This document shows, piece after piece, positions 12,256 through 21,689 of a DNA stretch of 64,000 bases (position 1 is its first letter; every line of letters starts with the position of its first letter). Location: positions 75,950,001-76,014,000 of the forward strand of contig NC_086097.1 in the NCBI RefSeq assembly GCF_963921235.1, written 5' to 3'. Made by a program: the position numbers and the translations under genes. A model generated the notes under the pieces. It worked only from the letters and a program-made list of their open reading frames with translations. It was not told where the DNA came from and ran no database searches. This stretch comes from Mobula hypostoma. Lineage: Eukaryota.

Positions 12256-12430
12256 CAAAGGACTGAATGCAGGTCTCCAGTAGGTCATCTAGACTGGCCC
12301 CTTTAGATAGCTGACCAACAGACATCATGCTCACTCGAGTGATCGGAGCAAGGTTTAAGCTTGATATACTGTAGCTCGCTGTTTAGGAGCAGTGGCAACT
12401 TCAAGATTTCTGCATTCTTGCCGGGGTTTC
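12256..12430 (-). CDS. RASGRP1: RASGRP1 (RAS guanyl-releasing protein 1) exon 2, N-terminus and start of REM domain; frame discontinuity as written
   Basis: 12328-12256 translates [24 protein letters not shown](D), matching human RASGRP1 [26 protein letters not shown], and ends at a phase-1 donor TTTG|GTAAG. The acceptor tttcatcttccAG|G at 12431/12430 is followed by KPRQECR (human KPSHGCR). Confidence 0.93.
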
Positions 12431-14029
12431 CTGGAAGATGAAACAGTAGCGTCCGATTTGCTCAGCTGAATCTCACATGAGTATAGCATCAGGACTGAAC
12501 ACAAAAGATAAAAGCAAAACCCCCTCGAGCTGGACTGGTAGGAGCCATCACCCTTTGGCAACTGAAACAAATAAGACACATTGTGGAGGCTGCATTTCAT
12601 ATGCAAATTAAAGTACTTGTAAAAAAAGTTCACTGTAACCTGCGAACATAGGCATGTTGTTTCGAACTAAACAGCCACAGAAAACAGAAGCAATGTATGA
12701 CACCTACAGTGCACATGGTCATACAGCAAAGAGACCTTGTATTCTGTTTGTTTCGCGTGAAACATTTGGTCATTTTGATGTTTTAATAATGTAGACGGTT
12801 GGTGTAATAAATTCATGACATGCTGAAAGTCTCAACTCACATGCCAATTGTGTCATTTATTAATTTTAGATAAAGATTCAGATAAGCAATACACCAGCTT
12901 AAGTGCAAGAAATTGCTACTTTTATATAAGGACAACAAGACCTTATTTTCTCCAAATTATTTACAATTACTTATGATGCAGAATCTAAATTTGACATTCA
13001 CCACTTTAACATGCTAGATATTCAAGTATTTTCAAGAATATATAACTGAGATATATGTTTTAAAAAGACTGATCTTTACCATGCTAATAGATTGGGAACT
13101 TTCCAGTAGCTAAAATGTGGGATTTCCAAGCTATAATGTAAAGTGCAGTTAACCGTCCTATTTATTGTATAGGCAACTTTCTGACGGGTGCAACATGTTT
13201 AGTAAATTCTAAACTCAATACAGGAATTGATGCCTGCTAAAATTATAGTCTCAGAAATAACGATGATTATAGTCAAGAAATGCAAATTTCTCATCCACTA
13301 TCCTTCACCTATTCTTAGCATTACGGTTTTTGTAAAAGCTACATATTATTTCAATGTTACCTATTTAAACAAGCACAGCAATAATCCAAGTAGCAATTAA
13401 CAAATAAACCAAAAATGCCAGGAATACTGATTGGGTCAGGCAGCATCGGACACTAAAACAGGATTGGACAATGGCCTTTAATTGGTTATGGTGAAGGGTC
13501 TTTATTTTGAAACATTAAATTGAGTATTTTTCTCCAAAAATGCTCCCTGACTTCCTGTATGTTTCTGGTATTTTATACCTTGATTTCAACTTGGAATTTG
13601 AACTTTGAATTTTACTTTGACGGCATCTGCGGGCTTAAGTGTTTATAAGTAAATATTTTAGGTTTGACGTATAGGTTGCACATTCGTCTAATTTTCCTTT
13701 GAAAGTATCGAATAATGGCCCACATTCTCAATATTGAAAGCTTAGGTGATGTAGGGTTGAGCAAGCCAGCAATTAAAGCCCACATTATATGAGCCTTTTG
13801 TAACTCAGATGGAAGACTGTGACTTTCTGTACTCTTCAGGGACAGCAGCAAGACTTATTTATGTTATACCATTATTCTATTTTTGTTGAAAACTTGAGAC
13901 TCTGCTTCAACCATGGCTGGAGGTAGTACCCATAAGGAGAAGAGGGAAGAATAGTTCGACAAGAAATTTCTGACAGCTATGTAACACAGATTTTGCACTT
14001 CTATGAGCATACAGGCTTTATCGAGGTGG

Positions 14030-14430
14030 CAAGGTCCAGGCACCAGAGTGTACTGAGGTGACCGAACCTGATGTTTGGACTTTGATTTAGACACCGGGCC
14101 AGATTGAAAAGGTCAGGGTGTTGGGGTCCGAGGCAAGGGATGGGTCGGTTCAGCTCGCTGCTCCACTATGTTTACTCGGCTCTGTGCTGAACTATGGATC
14201 TCTGACTGTTTTTGTGGACTTTAGTTCAGAACACTATTTGCTTGCAGTTATTGTTCGCATGATTTGTTTTCTTTTCGTTCTCTGTACATTGGGTGTTCGA
14301 CGGTTTTTTTTTTATGGGTTCTTTTGGGTTTCTTTGTTTCATGGCTGCCTGTTAGGAGATGAATACGTACATACAAAGTATACATACTTTGATAATAAAC
14401 GTACTTTGGACTTTGAACATTTGACTTTTT
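14030..14430 (+). mobile_element. Retroposon 3' fragment (Rex1-type tail)
   Basis: Ends ...ACATACTTTGATAATAAACGTACTTTGGACTTTG, the same tail as the Rex1-like copies at about 54550 and 62160. Confidence 0.55.
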
Positions 14431-15477
14431 GTTAGGCTCATGATGTCACATTCATCAAAAGTGTTCTGATCATCAATTCAAAAGATTAATTGTGTTCCTC
14501 TCTTCACAGATGCAGTCTGGCCTTTTCTGTAGTTTTGTAGTTTGTTTTATATGAGACATCTAACAGCTGCAGTATTTTGAATTTCCCCCATCCTATTGAC
14601 TGAACACTTTGTCCAGTGTTATTGATCACGTGAAATTTACATTAAATGCCACTAATATCTACCTTTCTAAGTGGTCATTGTCAATTTGTTAAGTGTAAGA
14701 GTGCTGTGAGGGGGCGAGAATGACAGAAGAAAATGAAGTATAAATGCATTCATTATGGTTAAAAAAAAACATTATATGCACTGTAAAATATCCTGAATGG
14801 TTCCAAGTTTCTTTCATCCTTGAAGCTTTGATAAATATGTTAAATTTTTTCCTGCTCTTCAAAGGGAACCAACCTATATGATATTTGCTGAATCTGCATT
14901 AATAAATTATAATTTACTACACAAGATTTTAATGGTCTCCATTTCACCAAATATTTAATTTCCTTTAGTCTCTGTAAATAACCCATAAAATAATGGTTAC
15001 ATTATTAGTGAAGCATGATGAAACAGTGAACATGATTAGGGAGTTAGATGCAAAAAACAAGGAACTCCAGCTTCTTAAAATAATCTCTTTGATAACGTGA
15101 AGGATCAAATGATAATATAAATAATCTATATTTTAAGTATATTTTTCCTATCCATTTCAAGTCTTTCTATGCCATCATTATCTTCAGCTCCATAACTTTA
15201 CACAGCCCTCCAAGATCTCAGTAGGTCGGCATCCTTTAGCTTTGGTCTCTTGTTCACCCCAATTCAGTTAAGCTGTGGTAATAGATTAGAAACTGATTAA
15301 AAACAGGAAACAAGTGATCAATACGAATGTCATACCAGAGTTAGTGATTAGTGCAAGGACCATTATTATTTCTAATTTACATAAGTGACTGGATTTAGAA
15401 ACGTAATGCAAAAGCATCATACTTTTTCAAACCAAGGGCAGTGGAAATGGAAAAAAAACAGCTCAGAAAATAAGAAC

Positions 15478-15658
15478 AAGAGAAAATCTGCAGATGCTGC
15501 AAATGCTAGAAACACACACAAAACTCTGGAGGAACTCAGCAGGCCAGGCAGCATCTACAGAAAAGAGTACAGTCAGAGATGAAGGGTCTCGGCCCGAAAC
15601 ATCGACTGTTTACTCTTTTCTGTAAAAGCTGCCTGGCCTGCTGAGTTCCTCCAGCATT
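15478..15658. repeat. Palindromic Penelope-derived mini-element with relic hammerhead core
   Basis: Arms CTGGAGGAACTCAGCAGGCCAGGCAGC / GCTGCCTGGCCTGCTGAGTTCCTCCAG flank CAGTC-AGAGATGA-AGGGTCTCGGCCC-GAAA-CATC-GACTG (15570-15608). Confidence 0.8.
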
Positions 15659-15989
15659 AGAAAACATGAATGAAGTAAACAATGTGCTTAATAATGTCAG
15701 ATGAAAATTAGGTAAATAAAGTAAAAAATGCAGTAGCTGATATTACAAGCACTGCAAGTTAACTTACACTCACACTCAAACACACCCACACTCACAGATT
15801 CAAGCTAGAAACAAGCACTTCAGGAGAGCATGCCATTGCTTTGTGCACAATGCAGGACCAATGCGTGGAATATCTACTGTCTTTAGTAGTGGAAGCAATA
15901 AATTTGCAATCACTTAAAAACTATCTGGTGTCATAACCATCATCTTGAGTGAATGAATGAAGATTGACCAAGTCCCTGATTTATAGTTA

Positions 15990-20600: not shown

Positions 20601-20696
20601 TAGGTAAATACCTCCTAACGAATAGCATTGAAATATGTGCCTCATCCATTTTGAGTTCACTTGCAGGAAGAATTCTCAAAAACTGAACACAGTTTC

Positions 20697-20920
20697 CTGC
20701 CACTGTCTGTAAGGAGTTTTTACGTTCTCCCCGTGACCGTGTGGGTTTTTTTCTGGGTGTTCCAGTTTCCTTCCACAGTCCAAAGATGTACTGGTTGGTA
20801 GGTTAATCGTTCATTATAAATTGTCTCGTGATTAGGCTGGGGTTAAATTGGGGAACACTGGTGGCGCAGCTCAAAGGGCCAGAAGGGCCAATTCCATGCT
20901 GTATCTCAATAAAATAAATA
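20697..20920 (+). mobile_element. V-SINE (HE1-like), 5' truncated
   Basis: V-domain GTTCTCCCCGTGACCGTGTGGG...TTTCCTTCCACAGTCCAAAGATGT...GGTAGGTTAAT, a CR1-like tail GGGCCAGAAGGGCC...TGCTGTATCTC and an AATAAA-rich end. Confidence 0.8.
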
Positions 20921-20949
20921 GATTAACATAGTCAATGGAACATAATAAA

Positions 20950-21192
20950 ATCAAGCACCCATTTACACTAACGTTCTTGATTCCCCCTCACTCCTAATAA
21001 TTCACAACAGATTATACACTCTCCTACACAATTTACAGTAATCAATTAACCTACTGACCTGCACAAATTTGGGCTGTGGGAGGAAACTGGTGCACTTTCA
21101 GAAAAACATGCAAATTCCATGATTATACAGGAGGTCACAATTGAATACTGTCATTGGAGCCGTGAGGCAGCAGCTCTGCTAACTGTGCCACT
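20950..21192 (-). mobile_element. Older V-SINE copy
   Basis: Antisense V-domain CAATTAACCTACTGACCTGCAC...TGTGGGAGGAAACTGG and tRNA-head end GTGAGGCAGCAGCTCTGCTAACTGTGCCAC. Confidence 0.7.
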
Positions 21193-21639
21193 CTAGATGT
21201 TGGACAATTCAAGTTTTACAATTGTACATAGCCAGAACTTTCAGAATTCACTTGCTCAGAGAGCTGACGGAAAATTGTGGAATGGGATCCAGGAACCAAA
21301 ACTGCTGGATAGAGACGTACGGTAATTGAAGCTTGGTCTAACTGAATGACAGAACAGACTAAAGGAAGAGGATGGTCTACTCTTGTTCTTATGCAAAATA
21401 TAAGTTGTCATAAACTTCAATTTATATTCATAAGAAAAAGTCCATAATAAAATACTCTTGTAGAATCTCTATGAAAAGTTCCGACTTAAACTACTTCAAA
21501 GCAACACAAAATCCACAATCGTCAGAGTATAATATTGATGAGAAACAAAATGGTTTACATTAAACTAAATAAAAAGCTGTAAGTAAAATTATTAAATAAT
21601 AATTGCTGATACATGAAGTGCAAGCAAATTGCGACTCAC

Positions 21640-21689
21640 TGAGATTCTTTCATTCCCATTACTGTTTGTATACTGTCCAAAGCTGACAT
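21640..21689 (-). CDS. RASGRP1: Predicted RASGRP1 first coding exon ([17 protein letters not shown])
   Basis: The ATG has A at -3 and an in-frame upstream TGA. The exon ends at a strong donor CA|GTGAGT in phase 2, which joins exon 2 to give ...[14 protein letters not shown], the same phase and position as human ...GKAREAPR|KPSHGCR. Promoter-like CpG-retaining sequence is adjacent. Confidence 0.72.

Follow-up and report, generated by a model that had tools for sequence, protein, structure and literature searches.

The stretch of DNA analysed here (the window) comprises 64,000 nucleotides (nt) of the 3.48-Gb Mobula hypostoma assembly (C1 75950001-76014000) and carries on its minus strand the 5' end of RASGRP1, whose product activates Ras and plays a central part in the development of lymphocytes. 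We deal with the N-terminal part of this protein, which the first-pass annotation of the window had described as frameshifted, offering an assembly error, a real deletion with a start at a downstream Met-Met, or rescue by a second splice acceptor as explanations. The parts of the gene concerned are the following (window positions, unless a contig is named):

21640..21803, minus strand: exon 1 of RASGRP1, now wholly 5' leader; its 5' end is a minimum, as a near-full-length RNA contig has 164 nt ahead of exon 2
12256..12430, minus strand: exon 2, 175 nt, from RNA contigs and the genome sequence
12256..12328, minus strand: presumed present start of the coding sequence, ATG-ATG, with 24 residues and 1 base; residues 1-24 of the RefSeq protein P0402, of 748 amino acids (aa), match at 100% (12328-12257)
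C1:75922142-75922032, minus strand: exon 3, approximately 40 kb beyond the exon 2 of the window; it encodes DAEGNLCRSS

The 3' border of exon 1 reads ...GGAATGAAAGAATCTCA/gtgagt at 21640, and exon 2 is bounded by a strong acceptor, tgtttcatcttccag/G at 12430, and by the donor TTTG/gtaag at 12256 (all on the minus strand, the slash marking the junction). The upstream contiguity of exon 1 was inferred, as only 30 nt of RNA sequence were shown before the join. Searching window positions 1-12255 for downstream RASGRP1 exons gave none. In the spliced frame starting at ATG 21689 there are 41 codons before a TAA at 12357-12355, and the conserved RASGRP1 sequence lies in a different frame, offset by one base, which has stops at 12403-12401 and 12385-12383. 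The 175-nt exon, the 41-codon frame and the offset of the conserved frame had all been described correctly in the first-pass annotation, and the RNA contigs confirmed the exon borders.

Concerning the identity of the gene, a protein search with eel RASGRP1 returned only ray-finned fishes, while a profile of Amia residues 1-470 together with five ray exons reached the cartilaginous fishes. Downstream exons were located with a RasGEF profile and the full-length eel RASGRP1 obtained by exon search. Matches to PF00617 are found at C1:75888789-75894975, on the same strand and downstream of the window. All downstream exons are present and open, and since they are intact the gene is not a pseudogene. 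For the cluster to which the Mobula protein belongs, the Pfam families listed are PF00618, PF00617, PF13405/PF13499/PF00036 and PF00130 (REM, Cdc25, EF hands and C1), and the last exons encode ...KWENMASFHKPKGDD...LEKERTQLREEKEKLHIENTNLQTRLLEAQQEIKAL..., aligning with the RASGRP1-specific coiled-coil tail of fish RASGRP1. Among the matches listed, the named RASGRP matches are RAS guanyl-releasing protein 1, those of bony vertebrates being 70-83% identical to the ray exons, and the ray protein belongs to one 90% cluster with other batoid proteins. The locus therefore presents the REM, Cdc25, EF-hand and C1 domains, the closest similarity to RASGRP1 and the long coiled-coil tail of a RASGRP1 orthologue. 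A 748-aa RefSeq model of Mobula hypostoma matches the locus at 100%, and three RefSeq accessions encode this same protein. As the model matches the locus from 12328, the public annotation already begins the protein at Met-Met. One further protein, P0007, appeared ray-like by identity, proved tetrapod-like and was dropped.

In order to follow exon 2 in RNA, Logan assemblies of four RNA-like runs (X1, X3, X9 and X30) were compared with window positions 10900-13950. X1 and X3 are of Mobula hypostoma, from a study and samples other than those of the assembly; X9 is of a related organism (organism B) and X30 of a more distant relative (organism K). Exon 2 is present in runs of Mobula hypostoma (separate study and samples) and of approximately 12 related organisms. 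Within 10900-13950 the contigs match exon 2 only, with one contig of X30 matching the adjoining upstream 131 nt as well, besides 34-36-nt matches to a repeat at 13412-13447; because the matching contigs cover exon 2 alone within this stretch, the runs represent spliced RNA. In X1 (a 4679-nt contig) and in X3 the match extends exactly over 12256-12430 with 0 differences and 0 gaps, and the exon has 1 substitution in organism B and 4 substitutions in organism K, again with 0 gaps. Upstream of 12430, the contigs of X1 and X3 run on into the last bases of exon 1, ACAAACAGTAATGGGAATGAAAGAATCTCA in reverse complement, so that 21640 is joined to 12430; the same join is seen in contigs of organism K. 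Downstream, the contigs of X1 and X3 continue into the sequence that encodes DAEGNLCRSS, namely exon 3. A comparison of the junction 21640-12430 with 21640-12368 had been recommended in the first-pass annotation: the contigs show the 12430 join, and none in any of the four RNA runs has a join at the acceptor 12368. Two other upstream joins were observed. In organism K, a minor contig has exon 1 joined to an acceptor further upstream:

12562..12563, minus strand: AG of the alternative upstream acceptor (exon start 12561), which adds 131 nt of leader

In organism B (X9), a 57-nt contig with a loose end at 12432 joins exon 2 to a different upstream sequence, TAAAAGGCGGGCAAGCCAAACTTAAAG, which was found neither in the window (with up to 3 mismatches) nor in the whole assembly (with up to 2 mismatches); its origin may lie in another first exon, in a difference between the species or in a chimeric contig. 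As for the repeat at 13412-13447, several unrelated Mobula hypostoma RNA contigs match this 36-nt stretch with 3-5 mismatches; a fragment of some transcribed repeat is the probable explanation.

The ancestral state of the N-terminus was studied by obtaining the loci of Pristis, Amblyraja, Rhinoraja and Narcine and aligning exons 1 and 2 to those of Mobula at the DNA level. The proteins of four sharks (813 aa), of the skates Amblyraja and Leucoraja (808 aa) and of the sawfish Pristis (808 aa) start with MRY(R/Q)QNA, and the consensus of the extension in sharks, skates and sawfish is MRY(R/Q)QNA.CQP...KE.QKPQQEC.NL.VAT...Q.SY.(I/V)SSLNL..ITRV..MM. The RASGRP1-like protein of Leucoraja erinacea (P0414, 808 aa) is marked by RefSeq as LOW QUALITY PROTEIN, that is, with a frame problem in the assembly, and its extension reads through normally. 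The ancestral extension comprises 59-64 in-frame residues, encoded by exon 1 (MRYRQNATCQP...KETQ) and by the first 100-odd bases of exon 2 (KPQQEC...), and runs into Met-Met(-Met). Mammals, turtle, frog and ray-finned fishes have N-termini that align with this extension, a Cys and a LAQIT-x-V/F motif ahead of Met-Met being common to them; homologous across those groups, the extension is therefore ancestral to jawed vertebrates, with a variable start point. In Pristis, Amblyraja and Rhinoraja a stop-free translation extends from MRYRQNATCQ to CIQSF. The coding part of exon 1 has 73 nt in Mobula versus 74 nt in these three batoids, and exon 2 has 175 nt in Mobula, 179 nt in Pristis and Amblyraja, 164 nt in Rhinoraja and 174 nt in Narcine. 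The expectation in the first-pass annotation that an in-frame exon 2 must measure 3n+2 is borne out by the three open-frame species (179, 179 and 164 nt), and the alignment with other rays that it had called for reveals the intact exon in Pristis, Amblyraja and Rhinoraja and a broken frame in Mobula. Specifically, exon 2 of Rhinoraja longicauda (L044:9913-10076) owes its 164 nt to a 15-nt in-frame deletion that leaves the long frame open, and exon 2 of Mobula is approximately 96% identical to that of Pristis in DNA.

Over the 31 nt that begin at ATG 21712 (ATGAGATACCGACAAAATGCAACATGTCAGC), Mobula does not differ from Pristis, Amblyraja or Rhinoraja, and for this reason ATG 21712 is regarded as the ancestral start. 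From there, the alignment leads to the following sites in Mobula:

21710..21712, minus strand: ancestral start codon of the long isoform (MRYRQNATCQ...), which now opens a 17-codon upstream open reading frame (uORF) ending with TAA 21661-21659
21681..21682, minus strand: 1-nt deletion in exon 1, ancestral CAG-CCT/CCA to CAG-C-T, one C being lost directly after the identical 31 nt
12376..12377, minus strand: 1-nt deletion in exon 2, the frameshift of the first-pass annotation, ancestral CGA-AGC or CAA-AGC to CG-AGC, the A at 12376 being lost
12329..12382, minus strand: 18 relic codons in the frame of the main ORF, homologous to Pristis; the TAA at 12385-12383 separates them from any in-frame ATG

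Additionally, one ATG of the ancestral ATG-ATG-ATG is lost at 12329/12328, as a 3-nt gap versus four other batoids. Read along the ancestral path from ATG 21712, Mobula gives MRYRQNATCQLWTVYKQ followed by a stop. Two details of the first-pass annotation have to be revised on the basis of this batoid alignment. It had placed the start at ATG 21689, which is a chance ATG within the ancestral codons ACA-TGT; the frame opened there resembles the homologous N-terminus because the exon 1 deletion brings it in frame with relic codons. It had also proposed a single lesion, a missing T at TTA/TAA, where homology points to the lost A at 12376 together with a second 1-nt deletion in exon 1. Across 59 extension codons polarised with the skates, the Mobula branch has 5 unambiguous non-synonymous changes and 0 clearly synonymous ones, 2-3 codons being ambiguous, and the Pristis branch has 1 non-synonymous and 1 synonymous change; small as these numbers are, the pattern on the Mobula branch would fit relaxed constraint.

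The broken frame is not restricted to one species. Compared with the open orthologues, the exon 2 deletion is found in the RNA of three species and the exon 1 deletion in the assembly only. The 175-nt exon 2 is common to organisms B and K in their RNA contigs, and organism K also has the Mobula-type end of exon 1, with codons GTA, ATG and ATG versus TTA, GTG/GTT and ATC in Pristis and the skates; these shared sequences place the loss before devil rays separated from at least one relative that is more distant. The RefSeq models of Mobula hypostoma, M. birostris, Hypanus sabinus and Hemitrygon akajei are all of 748 aa and start with MMS(V/L)GQLSKGAS, with two Met instead of three. Judging by these protein models, the loss is probably older than the split from dasyatid stingrays as well. 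Concerning the electric ray Narcine bancroftii, exon 2 (L043:9903-10076) has 174 nt, with a 5-nt deletion nearly at the place of the Mobula deletion, and the RefSeq protein has 749 aa and starts with MMMSLGQ; exon 1 was not found within the 10-kb flank. Since the frame is intact in sawfish and skates and Narcine has a different indel, its frame-breaking deletion is probably an independent loss, a reading that would fail if exon 1 compensates.

The transcript that joins exon 1 to exon 2 has a leader of at least 266 nt with eight AUGs upstream of the main AUG, opening ORFs of 2 to 41 codons, and all eight stop at or before 12355. The sites that structure this leader, besides the ancestral start codon, are:

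21709..21753, minus strand: 14-codon uORF (MKSVILFFLVLYKQ and stop), whose TGA overlaps the ancestral ATG (ATGA 21712-21709)
21640..21689, minus strand: first part of the 41-codon ORF, a chance ATG and relic exon 1 codons
12355..12357, minus strand: TAA that ends the 41-, 31- and 29-codon uORFs, 26 nt before the main ATG

The main ATG at 12328 stands in the context gtgagcATGA, with A at -3. As exon 1 is still transcribed and spliced to an unchanged acceptor, the old coding sequence is now 5' leader. The 14-codon uORF has the same length and position in three batoids, being MNTVILLFMVLYEQ and stop in Pristis (L042 ~2956-3003) and MNTVTLLFMPLYEQ and stop in Rhinoraja (L044 ~755-802), and this conservation may indicate that it has long served in the translational control of the long isoform. 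At 21657-21661 (minus strand) the sequence TAATG makes the stop of the 17-codon remnant overlap the next ATG, which arose from a lineage-specific G-to-A change in an old Val codon.

Taken together, we consider it very probable that the extension of devil-ray RASGRP1 has really been lost, as a fixed change of this lineage, by two 1-nt deletions, that the protein is made from Met-Met and that the old coding sequence has been left behind as uORFs. The frameshifts as such, their presence in RNA, their occurrence in several species and the open frames of the outgroups are what the data show directly. According to this explanation, the two deletions, which hit exons 1 and 2 separately, would have inactivated the extension in the myliobatiform lineage, drift following afterwards, and translation from Met-Met (ATG 12328 or the next codon) would yield the 748-aa protein with its REM, Cdc25, EF-hand, C1 and coiled-coil parts. 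Both the initiation at Met-Met and the route of the ribosomes to it are inferred: they would re-initiate after short uORFs, reach the main AUG by some leaky scanning, or enter on transcripts that begin with other first exons, and it is probably on one of these routes that expression depends. The three RefSeq accessions, the other upstream sequence of organism B and the other acceptor of organism K point to other first exons. The first-pass model of a real deletion that turned the extension into a uORF and moved the start to Met-Met is thus sustained in its essentials by the orthologue alignments and by the 748-aa models of four rays; the ancestral ATG and the exon 1 frameshift had escaped it.

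Several observations weigh against this explanation. Only the assembly shows the exon 1 deletion, as the loose end of the RNA stops short of the site, and the sharing by Hypanus and Hemitrygon is deduced from protein models, not DNA. Logan contigs drop rare isoforms, and a minor in-frame isoform could escape them. Furthermore, all eight upstream AUGs have a purine at -3 and the 41-codon ORF stops just 26 nt before the main AUG; the exon 1 mRNA therefore looks ill-suited to produce the main protein, and other leaders may matter more. A more ambitious proposal would be that the extension was lost at least two times in rays (in myliobatiforms and in Narcine) and that the overlapping stop-start chain of exon 1 (the ATGA of the 14-codon uORF, the TAATG and the ORF ending 26 nt before Met-Met) has been kept as a translational throttle. 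We regard this proposal as rather improbable.

Among the other explanations, the one that survives best holds that the short protein has always been the main ray product, made from other first exons, and that exon 1 is an irrelevant minor leader. Pristis does have a 749-aa isoform (X4) beside its 808-aa forms, Rhinoraja is annotated with a 749-aa form despite its open long frame, three RefSeq accessions stand for the same Mobula protein, and organism B carries another upstream sequence on exon 2; however, a near-full-length contig carries exon 1 in both Mobula hypostoma RNA runs, and no location in the genome was found for the upstream sequence of organism B. We hold this view to be possible, if on the unlikely side, and it is compatible with the loss of the extension by deletion, not opposed to it. 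The two RefSeq isoforms of Rhinoraja in our set (749 and 722 aa) start at or after Met-Met-Met despite the open long frame.

Much less of a case can be made for the rescue proposed in the first-pass annotation, namely a minor isoform that would enter exon 2 at a later acceptor, in frame from the chance ATG 21689, and so restore the motif beside Met-Met:

12369..12370, minus strand: AG of the hypothetical rescue acceptor (exon start 12368), lineage-specific, with GG in Pristis and Narcine and AA in Amblyraja

The join is absent from the contigs of the four runs, all of which have the strong 12430 acceptor, and the candidate site has a weak pyrimidine tract (8/17) with two further AGs 5 and 10 nt upstream. 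The phases would fit, the AG is derived in the lineage and unchanged in organisms B and K, and the relic codons are still open, with 1 of 51 bases differing from Pristis; that divergence, however, is not below the approximately 4% of the whole exon. We judge such an isoform very unlikely. Slightly less credible still is a continued translation of the relic motif, either from a near-cognate start (ATA 12367, ATC 12343 or GTG 12334) or by ribosomes that leave the 41-codon ORF through programmed -1 frameshifting. What speaks for it is that the main frame is open for 18 codons ahead of Met-Met and that the motif is conserved across vertebrates. The near-cognate codons, however, are of weak kinds, the start at Met-Met gives a complete protein according to RefSeq and the paralogues, and 12385-12355 holds no X-XXY-YYZ slippery heptamer, none being found in the zero-frame codons of 12387-12355 (cct aaa cag cga gct aca gta tat caa gct taa). 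Finally, although single-base indels are the commonest assembly error and the deletion falls in a 2-base run (AA to A), the assembly slip that the first-pass annotation had put forward as a homopolymer error, with a true exon 2 of 176 (or 179) nt and an intact long protein, can practically be dismissed in view of the gap-free 175-nt exon in RNA of two other samples of the species (X1 and X3, from another study) and of two other species (X9 and X30), of the second frameshift in exon 1, and of the RefSeq models of four related species that start at Met-Met.

Compared with known forms of the protein, the long isoform (Pristis pectinata X1 and Amblyraja radiata X2, 808 aa; sharks, 813 aa) comes from the same gene, with the same exon 1, splice sites and Met-Met as in Mobula. 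The species that have it keep an open frame from MRYRQNATCQ to Met-Met-Met, whereas Mobula has the two 1-nt deletions and one Met codon fewer. The short models that begin at Met-Met, all at one start position, are those of Mobula, Hypanus and Hemitrygon (748 aa), Pristis X4, Narcine X1 and Rhinoraja X1 (749 aa) and Latimeria (743 aa). In Pristis and Rhinoraja the short form exists alongside an open long frame, whereas in the Mobula lineage, and probably in Narcine, the long form cannot be encoded. The first-pass annotation had remarked that RASGRP2 and RASGRP3 start near the Met-Met position, and this holds for the representatives P0072 and P0078, which we take to be RASGRP2/3-like by their resemblance to known sequences: although products of different genes, they have a start that coincides exactly with one of the two Met of Met-Met, and the distance from there to the K-G-x-[ST]-[LV]-[DE]-x-L-L motif is the same.

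In human RASGRP1 the first 50 residues are predicted to be disordered and were excluded from the crystallised fragment 50-607 (PMC3728621). This human segment is homologous to the ray extension, with which it has the Cys and the LAQIT-x-V/F motif in common, and none of the folded domains extends into it. The human extension is in one frame with the rest of the protein and is encoded in a single first exon, and the fragment 50-607 presumably begins at the second Met of the homologous Met-Met. To our knowledge, no established function has been assigned to the N-terminal ~50 residues of RASGRP1. As in other cases where a shift of the start codon has created uORFs, Mobula keeps the former start and the coding exon in the mRNA, with ORFs that end before the new start. 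It is unlike the plain cases in its chain of overlapping signals (ATGA 21712-21709 and TAATG 21661-21657).

The annotation of a short protein was already known; the new elements are its cause (two deletions), the sharing among rays, the likely loss in Narcine and the conserved uORF at the old start. A literature search on alternative initiation of RasGRP1 gave nothing relevant beyond the structural paper (PMC3728621). If the loss is as proposed, rays provide a natural deletion experiment, with an order that has been without the extension since the split of devil rays and stingrays, and probably the electric ray too. As the extension would have been lost while the rest of the gene is intact, it can be argued to be dispensable for the core function, at least in these rays. 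Concerning annotation, the 748-aa RefSeq models would be right, and no frameshift correction would be needed. The locus also offers a clean case of a coding exon turned into a uORF-rich leader.

Apart from RASGRP1 itself, we were able to recognise other features in the window and the genome. At 7137-8207 (minus strand), in a wider region of approximately 5300-8500, intron 2 of RASGRP1 contains a 357-codon open frame that is reverse-transcriptase-like (...YLDFQKAFDKVPH...) and belongs, with neighbouring ORFs, to a LINE-type retroelement. A short interspersed repeat is located at 14010-14200. The whole 3.4-kb query yielded 2934 first-look candidates; among those scored, more than 40 were copies of this repeat at other places in the genome, with 78-84% identity. 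Finally, RasGEF exon matches with identical scores lie 160 kb apart at C21:36244227-36244502 and C21:36404153-36404428, with second exons at 36260388 and 36411885, and this pair has the look of a recent tandem duplication that involved another RasGEF gene.

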